Shown here piece after piece: positions 19,946 to 63,305 of a DNA stretch of 64,000 nt. This DNA comes from Podarcis cretensis (Eukaryota). A program made the position numbers and the translations under genes. Where the stretch lies: the NCBI GenBank assembly GCA_951804945.1, contig OX638158.1, positions 43,586,001 through 43,650,000 of the forward strand, written 5' to 3'. How positions within the stretch are numbered: the first letter of the stretch is position 1; every line of letters begins with the position of its first letter. Below the pieces are notes generated by a model. It worked only from the letters and a program-made list of their open reading frames with translations, ran no database searches and was not told the origin of the DNA.

Positions 19946-21619
19946 TATTCCACTTCCATCTAGAAGACAAGATAACTGGGACAGCGAAGGTAGATTCATT
20001 GACCATCTTCTCCCCCTCCATAGCTCACAAACCGAAGCCGTTTAAAGATAGGGAGTTAGCAAATCTATTGAAATCTTACACTTGGAGAGCATTTAATGTC
20101 TGACTCTTGGGAATATTTCTTTTATGTAGGAGTTTTATTTATAGAGGTTTGCTCTAAGGGAAGAATTATTAATAAAATACACCAAAGACAGCAAAACCTG
20201 TCTTCAAGGAACAGAACTGTGATGTAAACAAACATTAGAATCAGATAATGAAGCTTTTGTGCTGCAGTCGTATCACAAAGGAAAAACGGAAAAATGCTTA
20301 CTGAAAAGGTTGCTGAGCTGAAAAGCTTGTTATAAAGGCCAAAAATGCAGAACAGTTTTCTGAGTTATGAGTCTATAGGTGTCAAGCAACATTTTAGTTC
20401 ACAGTAAAAGCTGTGACAACCCATCCTATTATGCTGTCCAGGATGTAATTTTCTATCTCAGCCTTATTCAACAGGGACCCTCCAGATGTTTTGGACAATT
20501 TCCATTGCCTTGACCATTGGCCATGCTGGCTGGGGCTGATACCAGTTGTAGTCCAAAACATCTGGAGGGTACCTGGTTGGGGATGCTGCTCTAACTGCAG
20601 CCTGGCATGGTAGTTCATTTTACCACCCCCTACTACTGCGTTTAGATCCAGCCTCTCTTCTACATGTTATGTAAAGCCAAACTCACTTAAGCAAGTGCTC
20701 GTGAGCAGGGAAGGAGCAGTTTCTTAATTCTTTCCCTTCGCATATTAGTGGAAACACTAAAAACACCCACTCACCTTATATGCTTTACAATCAGCTGGCA
20801 CTTCCTTGTCTCTATATTTCAATTCTGTATAGTGCTCTCAGCAGTATATGTTAGCCCAATAAAAGTGGTAAGAAAGCAAATTTTCTTGGAGCTCTCCCCA
20901 CCCCTTTCTGGAAGCCTTCTACAAAAACTCAACTTGGTAGCCCATCTCGAAGAAGGAAAGCTTTGTGAAACTTTATTTCTACAAACTGCACCACAGTAGG
21001 TGGGTGTCCAGTAACTAACAACCATCAGTCAGTCAGTCACCAACTATGGTGTACAATCCAAGCCTATCTTATCAAGAGAGGCGTGCCTAAACCCGCTGAA
21101 CTCAATAGGCTTAAGCACACATAACTCTTCTCAAGCTTTTAGTCTTAAGCAGCCATCACTAAGCCATCCATGTCCATTACACAAGTATATTTAGCTATTA
21201 AGCTACATATAAAAGTAGGCGTGGGAGGCAGTGTAGGGAATCACGCATCCAAAGAGTATGCTTCCAAATTAGTGCGGCTTGTCCGAAAGATGCACAGTGT
21301 TTTAAGAAGTTTCTAGGGTGGGGGCTGCAATATCAAACACGAAGAACTCCGATAATGATTTCAGCTATGTATAGGAAGCAGCAACTAGCTGGATAGTTGC
21401 AGAACCAGACGTTTAAGTTGTTAACGTAATTTCAGGTCCCGGATGAATGAGCTAAAATTTGCTTTTAGCAACAGTTCAGATCTTACATAAAACATTGTTT
21501 TAATGGAAGAAAACTAATGGAAAAGATTACGATTATTCGAGCTTATTCCACATCTTCCCTAGTAATGCAGTTCCAGAGGTTGCAACCCTGATGGGAGGGA
21601 TACGGGGGTGTGATGATCT

Positions 21620-22720
21620 GGGCTAAATATCCTGCTGCGACGACTGCAGCAAAAGCTCAAAAAATTGCCTTTTCTGTCTATGGGGTGGCGCCCTGAACGC
21701 GCACCGCCCCCCCGAAGTCCTGAGCTGCTTGGCCCTGGGGAAAGAAGAGAGCGCGTGTGTTTATATGCGTGCGTGTGAACTGGAGCCAAGCACGTATTCT
21801 CTCGCCAGGCTGTTCTGCGCAGGGACTTCGGGAGACAAAAAGGGCGGGCCCACAGCGCGAGGCCTGCCTGTAGCTCTGCAGAACCAGCGGATTAAAAAAA
21901 TAATAAAAACCCAGAGGGCGGCGTCTCCGCCTGTTACCTCAGCGCCGTGCCCAGGATCCCCTATCACGTGATCCCCGAGAAGGGCGTGGTTGCGCGCGAA
22001 AGGCTCTCCCGCCCGCCGGTCCCCTTCCACAGCAAGGTCTGTGCGCAGGAGGCGATAGAGAGGTAGCGCGGCGGCCGTTGATGAGAGCATCAAGCGGCGA
22101 CTCCGAACCTGCAACGGCAGCGAGTCCGCGAGGGAGAGTGAGGAGGGGAGGGGGAGAAGAGCGAGCAGGCGGGCGCGCGGCCGACCGGCTTCAGTCAGCG
22201 CGAGCGGCGGCGTGAGGGGGGGGGGGGGGCGGCGGAGGCAGCGCTTCCCTCAGCGGCGTTCCGCTTTTCTCCTCCTCAAGCCATCTCTGGTCGCTCTGGC
22301 CCGGCCCCTCTCTCCGGGGGTGGCGGGTCCGGGGGACGGAGGGGGTCACTCCGCCCCTTCGCCCGGGGACCCCTGGGAACCGAGGTAAGAAGGCCGGGCG
22401 TGGCGTGGGGTGGGGGGCGTTGCCCTAGCGAGCTGTGGGGCGCCCTTGTCCCACTGGGCGTTTGCTGGCCCAGAGTGAGGATGCGCGGCGGTGGGGAAGA
22501 CGCGGGGCGGGGGGCTGCGCATTCAGACGAGCGTCTGTGGGAGGGGGGGGTCCCGGGTTGGGCGCTGGCGCGGCGTGACCTTGGGCACGTCTCCCAGCCC
22601 TGGCGGTTTTGACAGCAGCCACGGAGGCGAGAGGGAACTCCGGTGCTGCTGTCATAAAAAAAAGTTAAAGAGCTGTTGTGGCCCAAGGGAGCGGGGATGG
22701 AAGCGATGGAAACTGGCAAC
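21620..22720 (+). promoter_or_regulatory. OSBPL8: CpG island / main promoter of OSBPL8
   Basis: Dense CpG/GC block with GC boxes (GGGCGG), a palindromic ATCACGTGAT E-box at 21963-21972, and a plus-strand splice donor at 22385. Confidence 0.85.
22140..22384 (+). other. OSBPL8: OSBPL8 non-coding exon 1 (5' end approximate)
   Basis: ATG-free GC-rich segment ending at the consensus donor GAG|GTAAGA. It lies in the only CpG island upstream of OSBPL8 exon 2. Confidence 0.7.
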
Positions 22721-23399
22721 TACTGGGAGTGAGTCCTAATTCTCATATCTGCTCTCTGGTCTTGCCCACGTGGGTTTTATCTCTGTAACAATAGGTCAGG
22801 TGGATAAAGGTTCCTGAAAATCCACATTTTAATGTGCCGTACTCTACTTGAATTCATCATATTTATATATTAGGTTTATAACACGTGTTTTCAGTAACTT
22901 CCTGTAAATAGAGGGCAATCAGGCAATTTTTCTCTGCTTTCCTCCACCTATAACTAAAAGTGCCAGTTACCCTGCCCCTCTGCAGAGCTGCTAAGGGATA
23001 GATATATAACCAATTTGCCGGTGGAGGGGAATTGAAAGGTGCTGCAAGAGGCTTAAGCAAGAAAACCAGGCAGTAGGGTGGTGCCATATAAGTTGCAAAG
23101 TAATCACACCCTACCTTGTTGTTGTCATTGCCAATAATTGGCAGGTCCCACAACTTGACACGGAATTTTCAGTACTTGCTTTCCTTCCTCCAATTAGTCA
23201 ACCCTGTGCAAGTGGGTTGGTCAGTTGTTTACTAGGAGTCTGAGTGTATGACAGCAGCGGGGTTATTTATTCTGAGGATAGGTATGTATTATGTGCTCCT
23301 AAATAATTATGAATGCAATTTCTAGTTGGTTCTATGCAAATTTACCTGCCAGCCACCCCTCTAATTTATATAGTGCTTGTTTCTGAAGGGGTATATGGG

Positions 23400-24110
23400 G
23401 TGTTGTGGTGGGAAATACTACCTCTAGTGGGACATGTTGTGCCCTTTGTCCCCACCCTGCACTCAGTTCTCACCTGTGGCTCCTAGAAGCTGTCAGCATG
23501 TGACAGTGGCCACACCCAGGGAACATCTTCAACTGGCCTGCTAAACTAGGTGAGTATAACTGATGTGTCTCAAACCCTCAGTGAGTTAGGGACTTCCCCT
23601 GCATTCAAAGACAGGCTCCAGCAGATTAAGAGGATGAGACCAATAACGGGTCCAGTGGTCAAGAAAGCGGTTTCTTCATGTGCTGCAGAGGGAAGTGAGT
23701 GACAAATGGGGCTTGTCAAGGGAAGGTAACCCATCTAGGAGAAGGAAAACTATGATTCTAAACTTCTGCTGCTTTGCAGGATATCTTTGGGAGATGAAAA
23801 GGCTAAGGAGTAAATCCTACACAAATCTGGAGTCCCTAAGACAATTGGATGGCGCCTTGTACGCCTCCGTCTGTCAACTGCAGCCAAGCTGGTGACAAAC
23901 ATATTGCTTTTCTTTCCTTTGGACCACATCATCAAGGCCAAGAGGAGGGATATTTTCTTCTGGACAGCCCAGGACCTCCATACACACTGTTCAGGCTTGC
24001 ATCCCAGGGAGGTCACTCGGGTGCTGCTAACGCAGCGGTTTGACTTAAACCCCGGAGGTGCACTTTTTTGTCTCTGGAGACAGACAGATGCCAACAACAT
24101 GTTTCTAAAT
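23400..24110 (+). mobile_element. Probable non-autonomous non-LTR retroelement (RTE/Vingi-like)
   Basis: Compositionally distinct block of about 700 bp ending in gacagacagatgccaacaac. The family assignment rests on general resemblance only. Confidence 0.35.
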
Positions 24111-35665: not shown

Positions 35666-35707
35666 ATGGAGACAACTAGCTTTGAAGGGGAGCCGGATAG
35701 AACTTCG
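35666..35707 (+). CDS. OSBPL8: OSBPL8 (ORP8) exon 2 coding part, ORP8L start; the exon begins at 35620 or 35626
   Basis: METTSFEGEPDRTS versus recalled human MEGGLADGEPDRTS. Acceptor tttttcttgatag, phase-0 donor TCG|GTAAGT. Confidence 0.9.
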
Positions 35708-40060: not shown

Positions 40061-40097
40061 CATCATGATGAGATCAAAGACTGCCAGGGATCCTCAA
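40061..40097 (+). CDS. OSBPL8: OSBPL8 exon 3 (37 nt, cassette)
   Basis: HHDEIKDCQGSS+A versus recalled human LLGDSKDVLGPS(T). Donor CAA|GTAAGT. The 37-nt length joins exon 2 (phase 0) to exon 4 (phase 1) in frame. Confidence 0.85.
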
Positions 40098-45198: not shown

Positions 45199-45336
45199 GT
45201 GTGGTAACAAACAACGATGAAGCTCATGTTCTGAGTCCAGGAAAGATGAGCCAGCGTCAAGGAAAAGAAGGCTATCTTACTCCAACCAAAGATCTGCAGC
45301 AGCCATCATTTAGTCCAGGAACAGTCCATGGCCATG
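45199..45336 (+). CDS. OSBPL8: OSBPL8 exon 4 (138 nt); contains Met43, the ORP8S start, at 45246
   Basis: SVVTNNDEAHVLSPGKMSQRQGKEGYLTPTKDLQQPSFSPGTVHGHG versus recalled human TVVANSDESQLLTPGKMSQRQGKEAYPTPTKDLHQPSLSPASPHSQG. Acceptor tttttcag, donor G|GTAAGA. Confidence 0.95.
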
Positions 45337-57085: not shown

Positions 57086-57418
57086 ATAATAATAATAATT
57101 TATTACTTGGACCCCACCCATCTTGACTCGGTTGCCCCAGCCACTCTGGGCAGCTTCCAATAGAATATAAAACATACACGATACACCAGACATGAAAAGC
57201 TTCCTGATAGAGGGCTGCCTTCAGGCTATCCATGGGAGGTTGTACAATTTGTTATCTCTTTGACATCTGATAGGAGGACATTCCATAGGTTGGGTGCCAA
57301 TACCAAGAAGGCCCTCTGCCTGGTTCCCTGTAACTTCACTTCTCGCAATGAGGGAACTGCCAGAAGGCCCTCGGAGCCTGGACCTAAGTGTCTGGGCTGA
57401 ACAATGGGGGTGGAGACC
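57086..57418 (-). mobile_element. L2-type LINE 3' end
   Basis: (AAT)n tail; the minus-strand translation GLLAVPSLREVKLQGTRQRAFLVLAPNLWNVL matches the L2 ORF2 C-terminal motif. Confidence 0.8.
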
Positions 57419-59918
57419 CTGTTTTTTTTTGAGTAGTTAAACCATATGACAGATTTGGGGTGCACTCCCTTTTGAATGTTTACCGTCCATTAGTGTTTTC
57501 ATGGCTAACAAGCATATTATAGGGTAAAAGGCACTTACCAAGGAGGATCAGTGGCAAGAGGGAGGGGAGGGGGGGTGCTTAATCCTCCCATGCAGGGTGA
57601 TTTATTTTCACAAATGTTCTTGGTTTTCTCTCCGTTGAGCTTATTTCCTGTTTCATGGCCTGGCTGGGGAGATACAAATTTTAAATAGCCAGTTGGGGTG
57701 TGTGTGTATGGATTTGTAGGATAGAACTGGTGGATAGAGAACGGATTAAATACTATTATTCCCCCACCCCACTGATTTTCTCCTTCAGGTGCCTCCCTTT
57801 CCCACTTTGGTGTTGCTAAGGAAACCATTGTTTCTCTTGTAACCTCAAGTTCCGTTCTTAGATCCCTACGCTCAAGAACAGGTTCTGTGGGTGTGTTAAT
57901 ATTATAATACGTATCATTATAATAAATACTGGAACTGCACTTTTTTTCTTTTTAAATAGCACGACATTTCCCATTATTAAAGTGAAAAAAATATAATGCG
58001 AGCCTTTGTGGTGCAAAGGTTATAACAGATTGTACCTGTGAGAACTAAGCTCTGTCATAGCTTTCAGTTAACAGTTTTCTAGCTGTTAAGGGGATCTAAG
58101 CTGTGTCCATATGTAGAGTTATATGGATTTCACATACAGCGTGAGAAATTGAGAGTGAGATGTATGAAAGGTATCCAAAGCAGAATATCTTACTGCAGAA
58201 TGTTGGCACTGTCTTGCTTCTATACTGGAAAAGCAGACAGGAGGGAAAGGAATCTAATAGGATGTGTGTGACCTTCTGTGTGAGCTCAGAGGATGAGGAT
58301 TCCCATCAGGTCAGGGAGGGATATATTAGTGGTTTGTGTTCTGTTAATGGGCCAGAACATTTGGTATCTAGTAATGAAAAGCATGAGATCCAAAAGAATA
58401 TGAATAGAATGATGGTGGGCCCTTCTTTTACATACACGCATACTCTCTCTCTCTTTGCCGTTTTGGGAGACAGTAATTGTCTGAAAAGCAGGATAAAAAT
58501 ATAGTAAATTAATGTATTTTTATTGTATCGCTTAAACCTGACAGTTGCCAGATTTATATGGTATAAATAGTTGGATCCAAGTCATTTCTGTTTTGTTAGT
58601 CATTGAGATAAAATAGTTTGAAATCTTAAGTATTTTCTTGATCATCATCTGATATAAGAAAAGTATTTTATTGGTTTAATCCCCCCCCCCCACTGTACAA
58701 GCTTTTAGATTTCTTGCTATATTTCATTTCATGAATTCAGGCAAAATGATGGCTTAATCTCAGCTGAGCTATAGAATATCTGTTGTTGTTTTTTAATGAC
58801 TCATCAAATTAAGGGGAAATTGACTAGGAAGGGTTTTTTTGATAAAAAATGTTGTGTAAAGTTAGACATTTCGAATGGAAAGCAGGCAAAACTGACCACC
58901 TAATTTGCATAATGAGCAAATGAAGCATTCAAATGCTTGCAAAATTTTGAATGAAATTTTAAGCTTAAATTCTGTTTCAGTTGTTTCCATTAAAAGAGTT
59001 AGCCTGTGGTTTCTAAAGATAACATTTTTACTTATATTTATTGAGTATTGTTGTATAGTGTTGAGCAAATACCATAGCTTGTATTTAAACACGTTGAAAA
59101 TATGTCAATTTAATGAAAAAGTGACCCCCTTTCTCTGGAGTTGTTAATTATGTTAAAAAGCAAAGTCATCAATAAAAACTTTACACTTTTTTGATACTTG
59201 TTACTCTGTGCTAAATTCTGGATATTGCTGACGGAAGTTCTGACTCCTGTATCAGAAATTATTTTGGCAAGGGTCTGTTTGGTGGTATTGTTTAAATGAT
59301 ATGAATTAGTGCCTGCCTTCTAAAATGTACCCTAATACTGCATTCAGAAGCAGTGCTTTTTCTTTCAGAGCCCTTTATGTGAGTCCTTGCTGGCAAATGC
59401 TATTTAATCCACAATAAAAAGTACTGAAAATAAATGGGTTTCCATTTAATGGAAATTCCTTCTCTGATTCTCAGTAGTACTCTTAATTTTCTTGAGTGAA
59501 TTTTAGAAGTATACTCATAATTGTTCTGTGTGCAATAAAATAGAACTTGAATGATTAGGCAGCAAAGGAATTTCTTTAATAACTCCTCCATTCTGATGTA
59601 CTTTGTCATGACAGTTGTCTGGTGCCTGCAAAACAATGAAGAGTAACACCTTGTCTCGGGGCATGCTGACTGAAATATGACATGTTATTGATGGAGGAAT
59701 GGTAGCAGCTTGGATTGAATTCATAAACATCTCTTAGCTTGGTTACAAAGTTCAACAGCCTCTGGCATCTCTCCTTGTTCAAAGTGTGCACATGGCACTT
59801 GATCTTTGTGGGTCTTGCATGCTGCTAATCTGAATGTGAAGGGAAAATACTTTCTGCAACGTTCTTATTCCCGTCATCCTTCTGAATGAAAATAATCATT
59901 ATACAGAGCATCTAACTC

Positions 59919-60054
59919 ATGAAGGCAGAAGGTCCACAGCGACGTAGGTTTTCTTCATGTGCTGGAGTTTCGCTGCCTCCACGGGCTGATGGTCGGAAAC
60001 TTGTCCGGAATGCTTCATTCGGAGGATACAATGCACTTTCACCAGTCTTCCGAG
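59919..60054 (+). CDS. OSBPL8: Alternative first coding exon of OSBPL8 encoding an ORP5-like basic N-terminus
   Basis: MKAEGPQRRRFSSCAGVSLPPRADGRKLVRNASFGGYNALSPVFR(G), an ungapped match to the recalled human ORP5 N-terminus. It is 136 nt with a phase-1 donor GAG|GTTTGT compatible with exon 5, and is locally CpG-rich. Confidence 0.85.
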
Positions 60055-60307
60055 GTTTGTTTTGTCTCACTTTTTAATGTTCTCATGAAAATATTTATTG
60101 TAAAAGCTTCTACAAATACTACTTTTTTTTTTTTTTTTTTTAAAAAGCAATTTTCTAAGCTGAAAAAGCACCTGGATTCACGTTGAATAAAATAAAATGA
60201 GATTTGGAAATAATGATTCATGGTTGGCATGTGTTCTCGGGCAGCGCTTTCTTTAAGTTCAGCATTAAGAACGAAGTGCTTCATTGTAGATTGCGTGTGA
60301 TTGTACA

Positions 60308-60332
60308 TGATGATGATGATGATGATGATGAT
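60308..60332. repeat. (GAT)n microsatellite
   Basis: Direct read of tgatgatgatgatgatgatgatgat. Confidence 0.9.
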
Positions 60333-62398
60333 ATTACATAATGAGAATGATACTTGACTGAATATGGGTGGTGTCTTTCTTACCTGCAATTTAAGAGAAT
60401 TTTCAACATACTGGAATCTACAACCAAATGATTTTCAAGTAAATGGAACATGGCTTCTAATTAGGTGCAGGTCCTTTTGAAATCTGGAGTAGACAACATA
60501 GCAGGACTTTTGACTGTTAGAAGTAATCTTAAAATGTAAAATTTGAGGCCATGTTAATCATTGTTGTGTCCTTTAATCCTTACATTCCTTAATAATGTAA
60601 ATAATAACTTGGAAATACTCATAATGTTGTATATCTAGTTTGCATTGGTTCTAATGGACTTGATCAGTCTTGAAAATGCACAATTGCAAGGTTACTGTAA
60701 ATGTGTGAGTTAGTACTACTGTAAAAATTGATTTATTTAAGACAATTGCAACCTTCAAGCTAATTGCATTTTAATGTACCTATTAGTTGTCTACCTCTTC
60801 TTTTGTGGTTAGTAGTTTCAACACAAACATGATGTGAATCCCCTGGAAACTAGAAATAATGCTCCCTCTTTTCATGTTTTTTTGTGTAAGTAATAAACGT
60901 TTATACAACAAAACAAAGGACAAGCAGATTTGCTGTACTTGTATAACTGCAGCTTCAATCACTTATTGCAGAGTTCTGAATGTAACCACAACATTGCATG
61001 TTTCCTTTTCATAGTTTGGTTTTCAGGATATCTGAACCAAGCCAGTAAGTTGCATAACAACTCTTGTAAGGAAGTATGTTGTTATTTTTACTGAGTTTTT
61101 GCCATATCTTACTAAAAGTCCAGTTTGACATTTAGAGTGGTTTAATACTCACAGATGACAAAGTGAGATGTATGTGTGCTAGATCTCAAATGCAAGACAG
61201 TGTAGTTAACTTAGGTACTGCAACCTTACCTTAATTATAGCCTTTTAGATGAATTATCTGGGCGAGGGAAACACAGTATCTGTTATTATGAATTTCATGC
61301 TGTTGAATATGTCAGTGGTTGGCATTTGATTCACATTCCTTCTTTCTTTTTTAAAACCAGTTTATGTGCGTGTAACTTGCTCACTGACTTTGTATGAAGA
61401 GTAGAGCACCCTAGACATTAATTGTGGTGTCATGAGCCCCATTCTCTAGACATATCACAAGGTACATGAATGCTTGGAGCAGTAAGATGTTGCGCACTGG
61501 CCCTTGCCCATACAAATGTCCAAAGAAAGGCTGTGCATGTAGAAGTTGCTGCCAAATCTCAGTTAATCCCAAATTGTTCTAGGGAATTTCCCAAGCTCCT
61601 GGTAAGTTTACCAGGAAGATAACATTTGCAGCTAATACTTTCCTGAGGAATTTCTGATTAAGATAAGTGAATTCACTTGCCGCTTTGTGGTTACTCCGAT
61701 CTGCGTTTATTAACACAAGGAGTAGAAATGGCTTGTTAGCACTACTCTCCTTACTTGGCTTTGCACAAGCTCTGCTTCATTCTGTTTTATGCTCCATTGA
61801 TTAGTTCACATCCGTGGATGTGTGTGGTGGTATATGGTGTGAATATGATAATGCCTAATCCTAGCGGCTTACTCGATCATGAATTTATTATTAGATTCCA
61901 CTTCCGTCTTATTTTTCTGATGCCTGATGAGAAGGCTTTGCATTGTTGGAACTGCTGTAACCTGGGGGTGGGCTGGCAAGCCAGTTCTCCTGTGGACTGA
62001 AACTCTCTGTGCTTATCTATGTTGTGCTACGTGCTACTAGTAGTTGGATATTTTCATATAACTGAGTAATTGAGATACCTCTGAATGCCTGGAAGGTAAA
62101 ATACAAAATACAATTGGGACAGGGTTGATAACTACCATTCATGCTTGGAACTTTGTAGGTTGGGAACATAACCACTTTTGGACCCTAGGTCTCACACGAC
62201 ATGGCTTTAATATTAAACAAAAAAAATCCTAGTTGTAAAGGAATTACAAAAACATTTGGTGAACAAATGGTGACATATACACCATGTCCCTAAGTATATT
62301 TGGTCAGAGTTTTAATAGCTTTGACTTATTTAGGATTTCAGCCTTAATGGCATATGGGATACACTGATTTTTTGAAACCATTTCGATTTCTCTTCAAG

Positions 62399-62469
62399 GT
62401 TTTGACAGAGGGAAGGATGATGCCTCACAAAGTAAAGATGATTCTACACAATCAATGTCAAAAAGCAAG
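62399..62469 (+). CDS. OSBPL8: OSBPL8 exon 5 (71 nt); the gene continues beyond the window
   Basis: (G)FDRGKDDASQSKDDSTQSMSKSK versus recalled human GFERGKEDISQNKDESSLSMSKSK. Acceptor tctcttcaag, donor AAG|GTGAGC. Confidence 0.95.
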
Positions 62470-62625
62470 GTGAGCACCTTAACCTTCAGACAGCATAGTT
62501 CAGTTTGATGCTTCTAAGTGAGCTTGGATACGTAGTTGCAATTAATTTAATCTTTTCCCTACCTATCTCATTTGTGGCTTATTTTAAATAGTAAGGTGAA
62601 TTATGTTTATGTGTAATCTTTGGTT

Positions 62626-62910
62626 TGGCGGGGTGCGCTCCCGCTGCTCGGTCCCAGCGCCTGCCAACCTAGCAATTCGAAAGCACCTCCGGGTGCAAGT
62701 AGATAAATAGGGACCGCTTACCAGCGGGAAGATAAACGGCGTTTCCGTGTGCGGCTCTGGCTCGCCAGAGCAGCGATGTCACGCTGGCCACGTGACCCGG
62801 AAGTGTCTCCGGACAGCGCTGGCCCCTGGCCTCTTAAGTGAGATGGGCGCACAACCCCAGAGTCTGTCAAGACTGGCCCGTACGGGCAGGGGTACCTTTA
62901 CCTTTACCTT
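62626..62910 (+). mobile_element. Young 5'-truncated Sauria SINE
   Basis: Core gccaacctagcaattcgaaagcac..gtgcaagtagataaatagg..ggccacgtgacccggaag, (ACCTTT)n tail, perfect 12-bp TSD TAATCTTTGGTT (62614-62625 and 62911-62922), many intact CpGs. Confidence 0.92.
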
Positions 62911-63278
62911 TAATCTTTGGTTATAGCACAAAAGCAAGCACTAATATTTGTTTTTAAAGCCAGTTTGTGAAAAAAAGTGAGGGCTGCTCAGGAGATGCAG
63001 TGGGCCTTTGGTGAATTCTATTAGCTACTTGGTTAAGTAGGAGGTATATTATTTTAGATGAACTAGCCATAGCTGGCAATAGGCATTGGAGCATCAAGTG
63101 ACAAGGTAGAATCCACAAGTAAACCTGCAACTTATGTGCATTTCACTTGTGCACATTCAGCTTTACATGCATGTCAATTAAAAATAGAAAGGGGGCGGGG
63201 TTCTGGGGGAAATGACTTTGGCAATCCTCTCTGCCGTTGAATCCAATGAATTTTGACTATACATGATTTTGGTTTTAG

Positions 63279-63305
63279 GCGCAATCCCCAGAACATAGCC
63301 CCCAG
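63279..63305 (+). CDS. OSBPL8: Candidate 27-nt in-frame OSBPL8 microexon (AQSPEHSPQ)
   Basis: Acceptor ttttggttttag, perfect donor CAG|GTAAGT, phase 0/0 after exon 5, no stop codon. Confidence 0.55.

Follow-up and report, generated by a model that had tools for sequence, protein, structure and literature searches.

An ORP5-homologous exon spliced from intron 4 of OSBPL8 in Podarcis cretensis, a candidate alternative start of ORP8

Two variants of ORP8, namely ORP8L and ORP8S, have been described, with 'even three' bands reported on blots (PMC7356933). The acidic N-terminus of ORP8 lowers binding to liposomes and to the plasma membrane, and inhibits even ORP5 (PMC7356933, PMC5940310), whereas the very N-terminus of ORP5 is a cluster of arginines, and has been contrasted with the acidic N-terminus of ORP8 (PMC5940310). 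Mutagenesis of ORP5 mapped a critical determinant of membrane binding outside the first exon, beside the PH domain, and the polybasic segment that drives membrane binding, which adjoins the PH domain, is common to all isoforms (PMC5624964). Studies of the exchange of PS and PI4P between the ER and the plasma membrane take only ORP8L and ORP8S into account, and cast ORP8 as a partner of ORP5 that has an acidic head and binds weakly. Additional human OSBPL8 isoforms with alternative N-termini exist. No description of a third ORP8 isoform, of an alternative OSBPL8 promoter or of homology between an ORP8 exon and the start of ORP5 was found in the searchable literature.

Here we report an exon, termed exon B, in intron 4 of OSBPL8 from Podarcis cretensis, located within a stretch of 64,000 nucleotides (the window). 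Exon B is genuine: it occurs spliced in mRNA, it has been conserved between sharks and this animal, and it shares homology with the N-terminus of ORP5. OSBPL8 probably uses it as a true alternative 5' coding exon, for which we infer a promoter of its own, translation and an ORP5-like avidity for membranes.

The coding frame of exon B and its setting in OSBPL8

The canonical 5' coding exons of OSBPL8 and the common exon 5 were located in the window as follows.

35666 to 35707, + strand: coding part of canonical exon 2, with the start of ORP8L, METTSFEGEPDRTS
40061 to 40097, + strand: canonical exon 3, coding for a portion of the acidic leader
45199 to 45336, + strand: canonical exon 4, in which the acidic ORP8L leader ends and ORP8S begins (MSQRQ), closing with a phase-1 G (located by tblastn)
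62399 to 62469, + strand: common exon 5, 71 nt, with its acceptor AG at 62397-98

The start of exon 5 had been correctly placed in the original prediction, but its end had been set at 62470 and not at 62469. When rebuilt from exons 2, 3 and 4, the ORP8L leader was found to be 42 aa in length with 9 acidic and 3 basic residues, and the exon-4 segment specific to ORP8S was found to comprise 30 aa with 3 basic and 2 acidic residues. Between exons 4 and 5, the intron contains the coding part of exon B, which is delimited by the following features.

59913 to 59915, + strand: in-frame TAA, two codons 5' of the ATG at 59919
59919 to 60054, + strand: coding part of exon B, an ATG-led frame of 45 codons plus 1 nt (phase-1 end), encoding the ORP5-like N-terminal peptide
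60055 to 60056, + strand: GT donor of exon B (GAG/GTTTGT), with its joint present in RNA

The window sequence reads from the ATG at 59919 through 45 codons to 60053, followed by a single G at 60054, and since the in-frame TAA lies at 59913-15, this ATG is the earliest possible start of the frame. Exon 4 and exon B both terminate in a phase-1 G, hence exon 5 can accept either of them. Across the joint of exons B and 5, the split codon G/GT encodes Gly, after which the frame continues as FDRGKDD...SMSKSK up to the donor that follows 62469. The original prediction of an ATG-led 136-nt frame, with a phase-1 donor that joins exon 5 in frame, was thereby upheld by both the sequence and the joint seen in RNA.

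The exon B peptide contains 9 basic and 2 acidic residues, and the charge counts that had been predicted for it and for the 42-aa ORP8L leader were exact. Retention of CpGs in an otherwise CpG-depleted intron, which had likewise been proposed, was evident from the 8 CpGs of the 136-nt exon, corresponding to an observed/expected ratio of 0.87 vs 0.25 for the whole window. A Pfam scan of the 45-aa peptide matched no family.

Several other features of the window were recorded. Blocks rich in CpG (observed/expected 0.53-0.63) occur at 1-2000, which probably belongs to the neighbouring gene, and at 20001-24000, which probably represents the main OSBPL8 promoter and exon 1. Two GC-rich stretches at 57226-57830 and 62620-62930 (GC 0.45-0.56 vs 0.3-0.4 in the rest of the intron) contain tRNA-like letters along with long ORFs judged spurious; they probably represent repeats of the SINE type, and the mapping of reads avoided them. 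Just 3' of exon B are a poly-T run (60125-60146) and an (ATG)n microsatellite (60299-60333), both of which were skipped as repeats in read mapping.

Relationship to ORP5 and conservation in ORP8

The gapless likeness to the ORP5 N-terminus that had been claimed for the exon B peptide was borne out by BLASTP, which produced gapless, Met-to-Met alignments with ORP5-like X3 of the crow Corvus kubaryi (21/43 identical, E 5e-11) and with a catfish ORP5 (19/43 identical, E 9e-10). Four ORP5 N-termini (Corvus kubaryi ORP5-like X3, Characodon, Ameiurus and Bagarius), retrieved through a search with the turbot fragment, scored 84-102 against the window peptide, vs a mean of ~20 (sd 4) for shuffled sequences; the observed score was reached by 0 of 5000 shuffles (z ~19).

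A joint alignment demonstrated that the alternative ORP8 N-termini and those of ORP5 share the columns MK.E, RR(F/L)S, D/E-x-R-x-L-x-R-N and a terminal Gly, and that the ORP8 copies also share a near-invariant RKL(V/I)RNASFGGYNEL. Either RRFS or RRLS was present in one column across all of the alternative ORP8 and ORP5 sequences, and the PKA-type RRFS site that had been predicted agrees with the R-R-x-S consensus in this conserved column, as a sequence match only.

Exon B thus resembles the first coding exon of ORP5 (OSBPL5) in its MK.E start, its RRRFS.C motif, a spacer of similar length, its D.RKL.RN motif and the aligned terminal Gly, as well as in its gapless identity of 44-49%, its extreme N-terminal position and its net basic charge. 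The two differ in that exon B is an alternative exon in OSBPL8 and not a constitutive start, and in that the near-invariant ORP8 core is more conserved than its ORP5 counterpart.

The 45-aa peptide was utilized in a phmmer search against 1.84 billion representatives (50% identity clusters, inside which full-length isoforms are hidden). This retrieved 18 matches at E <=0.001, comprising short ORFs and fragmentary gene models, with those named originating from sturgeon, tuna, turbot and arowana. The exon B peptide was contained in 17 of the 18; the other (P0017) gave repetitive matches of low identity and was rejected as a peptide carrier. Separate protein searches, that with the turbot fragment included, covered proteins of 0.55-1.75x the query length, a range that stops short of full-length ORP8 (~865 aa) in tetrapod annotation and in that of this genome; within it, no named tetrapod fragment was retrieved, which is uninformative.

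NCBI gene models that start with the exon B peptide were retrieved with the turbot fragment for an ORP8-like protein of Sinocyclocheilus rhinocerous (continuing ...LPG/FDRGKEE...), an ORP8-like protein of the whale shark, Rhincodon typus (continuing ...LPG/LDKGRDD...), and the ORP8 'isoform X5' of Tachysurus ichikawai, where the peptide is followed by the exon-5 homologue. The whale shark ORP8 was identical to the window peptide at 29/46 positions. Exon B had been regarded as hidden, which does not hold for annotation, given that these fish and shark models begin with its peptide; the accompanying suggestion that a predicted isoform may already be present in automated annotations proved correct. 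The models resemble the arrangement in P. cretensis in having exon B as the protein start and the same following exon, but they are automated predictions in other species, whereas here the junction was seen in RNA. The existence of the isoform is already known to gene-prediction pipelines (fishes and shark).

About a dozen further ORFs from run assemblies (P0001, P0004, P0005, P0019, P0020 and P0140-P0145) were intact and had 68-82% identity to the window or to each other, the collected orthologues being ORF calls, such that broken copies would escape detection (ascertainment bias). All of these ORFs read straight through the G/GTTTG donor (as G-L-F or similar) and, judged on that reading, are unspliced genomic or pre-mRNA copies. 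The intron codons directly after the donor (60057-60075) read GLFCLTF in the window, and the G-L-F pattern is found in most species, with GLLFLK, GLFV, GLFL and GLFS among the donor-proximal readings of other species' unspliced ORFs. This suggests that the intron sequence near the exon B donor is conserved, and the conserved letters are possibly a splicing-regulatory element. For P0005 and P0020, which come nearest to the window over the ...GVSLPPR...SPVF.G parts, the called ORF starts MRRRFS, at Q7 of the window peptide. The MK.EG start may have been lost or shifted in this relative, and the first six residues may be dispensable.

A hidden Markov model of the exon gave no match to ORP5/8-like N-terminal fragments of arthropods and nematodes. 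That the exon occurs in ORP5 and, in shark, sturgeon and teleosts, in ORP8 as well agrees with an origin that predates the duplication which gave rise to ORP5 and ORP8, and the term 'ancestral' would apply only as far as the vertebrate stem, since the exon is seen in both paralogues and in a cartilaginous fish. The original prediction that OSBPL8 has kept a first coding exon that predates the duplication is in keeping with the presence of the exon in both paralogues, shark ORP8 included; exon B is not the first exon of its transcript, however, as it is preceded by the non-coding exon A described below.

Exon B in RNA and competing explanations

RNA was mapped to a 4-kb region (58600-62600) from two raw RNA-seq runs bearing the same species label (X23 and X24) and from two contig sets, X6 and X1, the latter from a related organism. 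The predicted junction of exon B with exon 5 was detected, being reported as 60052>62397, which is equivalent to 60054>62399 (GT..AG, 6 nt ambiguous). It was present in two raw stranded reads of X23, which had differing start points and the same strand as the exon-5 reads, and, at a mean depth of 50, in an X1 contig of 553 nt, the canonical X1 contig having a depth of 82. The canonical junction of exon 4 with exon 5 was represented by 11 reads in X23 and 8 reads in X24, with loose-end letters that match 45306-45335. The exon B junction therefore accounted for 2/13 exon-5 junction reads in X23 and 0/8 in X24, and is a minority form in the raw-read runs. Its share in the X1 sample looks larger, contig depth being a poor measure of expression. 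A contig of X6 (59722-60109, depth 11.7) runs unspliced through the exon B donor, with adjoining intron pieces at a depth of 2-4, and represents either intron retention, pre-mRNA or DNA, the RNA label of this run being only guessed.

Downstream of exon 5, a 27-nt in-frame cassette micro-exon was observed at 63279-63305 (+ strand; peptide AQSPEHSPQ), with the acceptor ttttag/ and the donor CAG/gtaagt. It is located between exon 5 and the following exon, which is beyond the window. Exon 5 was joined to the micro-exon in 6 reads of X23, 3 reads of X24 and one X6 contig, and was joined directly to the SESKLYNG exon, with the micro-exon skipped, in 9 and 8 reads (X23 and X24, respectively).

The X1 contig also established the structure of the transcript upstream of the coding frame.

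58226 to 58309, + strand: exon A, non-coding, its 5' end being a minimum, with the donor CAG/GTCAGG at 58309/58310 (X1 contig)
59615 to 59918, + strand: 5' leader of exon B, 304 nt, with its acceptor AG at 59613-14 and 10 upstream ATGs (X1 contig)

The contig consists of a piece that covers 59612-60052 and 81 letters from 58226-58306 that are not adjacent to it in the genome, ending ...GATTCCCAT. The CAG at the joint of exons A and B is ambiguous between both sides, and the match was made from 58277 onward. The intron between the two exons extends from 58310 to 59614 (GT..AG), the full exon B is 59615-60054, and its upstream partner in the contig is exon A and not exon 4. No acceptor AG was found where the contig stops (~58226), and transcription may start near this position, as inferred from the end of one contig. 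The CpG/GC profile of the window revealed no CpG island at the exon A/exon B region. As exon B is preceded by a non-coding exon and not by exon 4, an intronic alternative promoter for the exon A-exon B transcript fits the data.

Each of the 10 upstream ATGs in the 304-nt leader opens an ORF of <=14 codons, exon A adds more ATGs, and the start context at 59919 (ctcATGa) is weak. The combination of a uORF-rich leader and a weak context suggests low or regulated translation, and translation of the exon B isoform, if any, is therefore likely to be inefficient or regulated. The same features would be expected if exons A and B made up a 5' variant that is unproductive or has a regulatory role ('poison' or uORF-laden) and in which the ATG at 59919 is rarely or never used, as would the low junction counts and the unspliced read-through contig of X6. 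We nonetheless regard such a variant as improbable, because conservation of the peptide extends from shark to this genome, the peptide has homology to the translated N-terminus of ORP5, CpGs have been retained in the exon, and the frame and phase-1 donor were intact in every orthologue seen (all ORF calls).

Exon B might otherwise be an internal cassette between exons 4 and 5 that adds to the N-termini of ORP8L and ORP8S, as depicted in the sturgeon (P0002) and tuna (P0007) models, where the MSQRQ exon runs into the peptide in one frame. These models are ab initio predictions, however, and in this window the ATG is preceded, at a distance of two codons, by a TAA, and the phase-1 end of exon 4, when read into 59615, encounters a stop within ~10 codons. 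Together, these stops exclude that exon B is used as an in-frame internal cassette in this genome. Only one RNA contig reaches further upstream, and in it the partner of exon B is exon A, joined at 58309. On account of these upstream stops and the exon A partner, the in-frame cassette was rejected in this species, and an internal cassette of any kind is considered very unlikely. Finally, a chance open frame in the intron, devoid of biological meaning, was rejected with near certainty, for although frames as short as 45 codons are common in introns, this one is spliced in RNA and has significant homology to ORP5 and to the ORP8 of distant vertebrates.

A candidate ORP5-like form of ORP8 and its implications

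With exon B taken as an alternative 5' coding exon, a course of events leading to a third form of ORP8 can be proposed. A dedicated promoter in intron 4 would start the exon A-exon B transcript, in which, as the RNA shows, exons 2-4 are bypassed and exon B is spliced in frame to exon 5. Translation would yield a third ORP8 isoform, in which a module of net charge +7 replaces the acidic 42-aa leader and the 30-aa ORP8S segment, and brings with it RRRFS, an arginine cluster as in ORP5, together with the near-invariant RKL(V/I)RNASFGGY. Through the loss of the inhibitory leader and the gain of basic charge, N-terminal binding to the anionic plasma membrane would be strengthened, as in ORP5. Two conserved serines of the basophilic-kinase type (RRxS and LxRxxS) could switch membrane binding off, and the uORF-rich leader would gate translation of the isoform.

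The candidate isoform resembles ORP8S, which is without residues 1-42, in that the acidic leader is removed (PMC7356933, PMC5940310) and everything from exon 5 onward is shared. It differs in that ORP8S starts at MSQRQ in exon 4 and keeps 30 exon-4 residues, whereas the exon B form drops exon 4 and gains 45 residues, 9 of which are basic and 2 acidic. With the inhibitory leader lost and this basic peptide gained, the candidate isoform should be closer to ORP5 in membrane avidity. The original prediction had drawn on the polybasic N-terminus of ORP5 as an aid to membrane binding; the polybasic segment proven in this role is that adjoining the PH domain, and what exon B does supply is the N-terminal arginine cluster. 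The proposal in its most complete form holds that OSBPL8 has retained an ancestral ORP5-type start exon for >400 million years, under a promoter of its own and gated by uORFs, in an isoform that binds the plasma membrane constitutively via its arginine cluster and has a two-serine off-switch. We put this forward tentatively, as it is unlikely to be right in all of its parts.

Were such an ORP5-like, gated isoform to exist, it could account for the 'third band' seen when ORP8 is blotted, and models of PI4P/PS exchange that are based on ORP8L and ORP8S would have to account for the exon B form. OSBPL8 has an exon encoding an arginine cluster that has been conserved since before the split of sharks and bony vertebrates, and as this exon is both spliced and conserved, an ORP5-like form of ORP8 can, in principle, be produced. 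If translated, exon B would change the interpretation of ORP8 knock-downs, antibodies and overexpression constructs, and would be a candidate means by which ORP8 could be recruited in a tissue-specific or kinase-controlled manner. Its translation would also suggest that, of the two leaders of ORP8, it is the acidic one that is derived and not the basic one.
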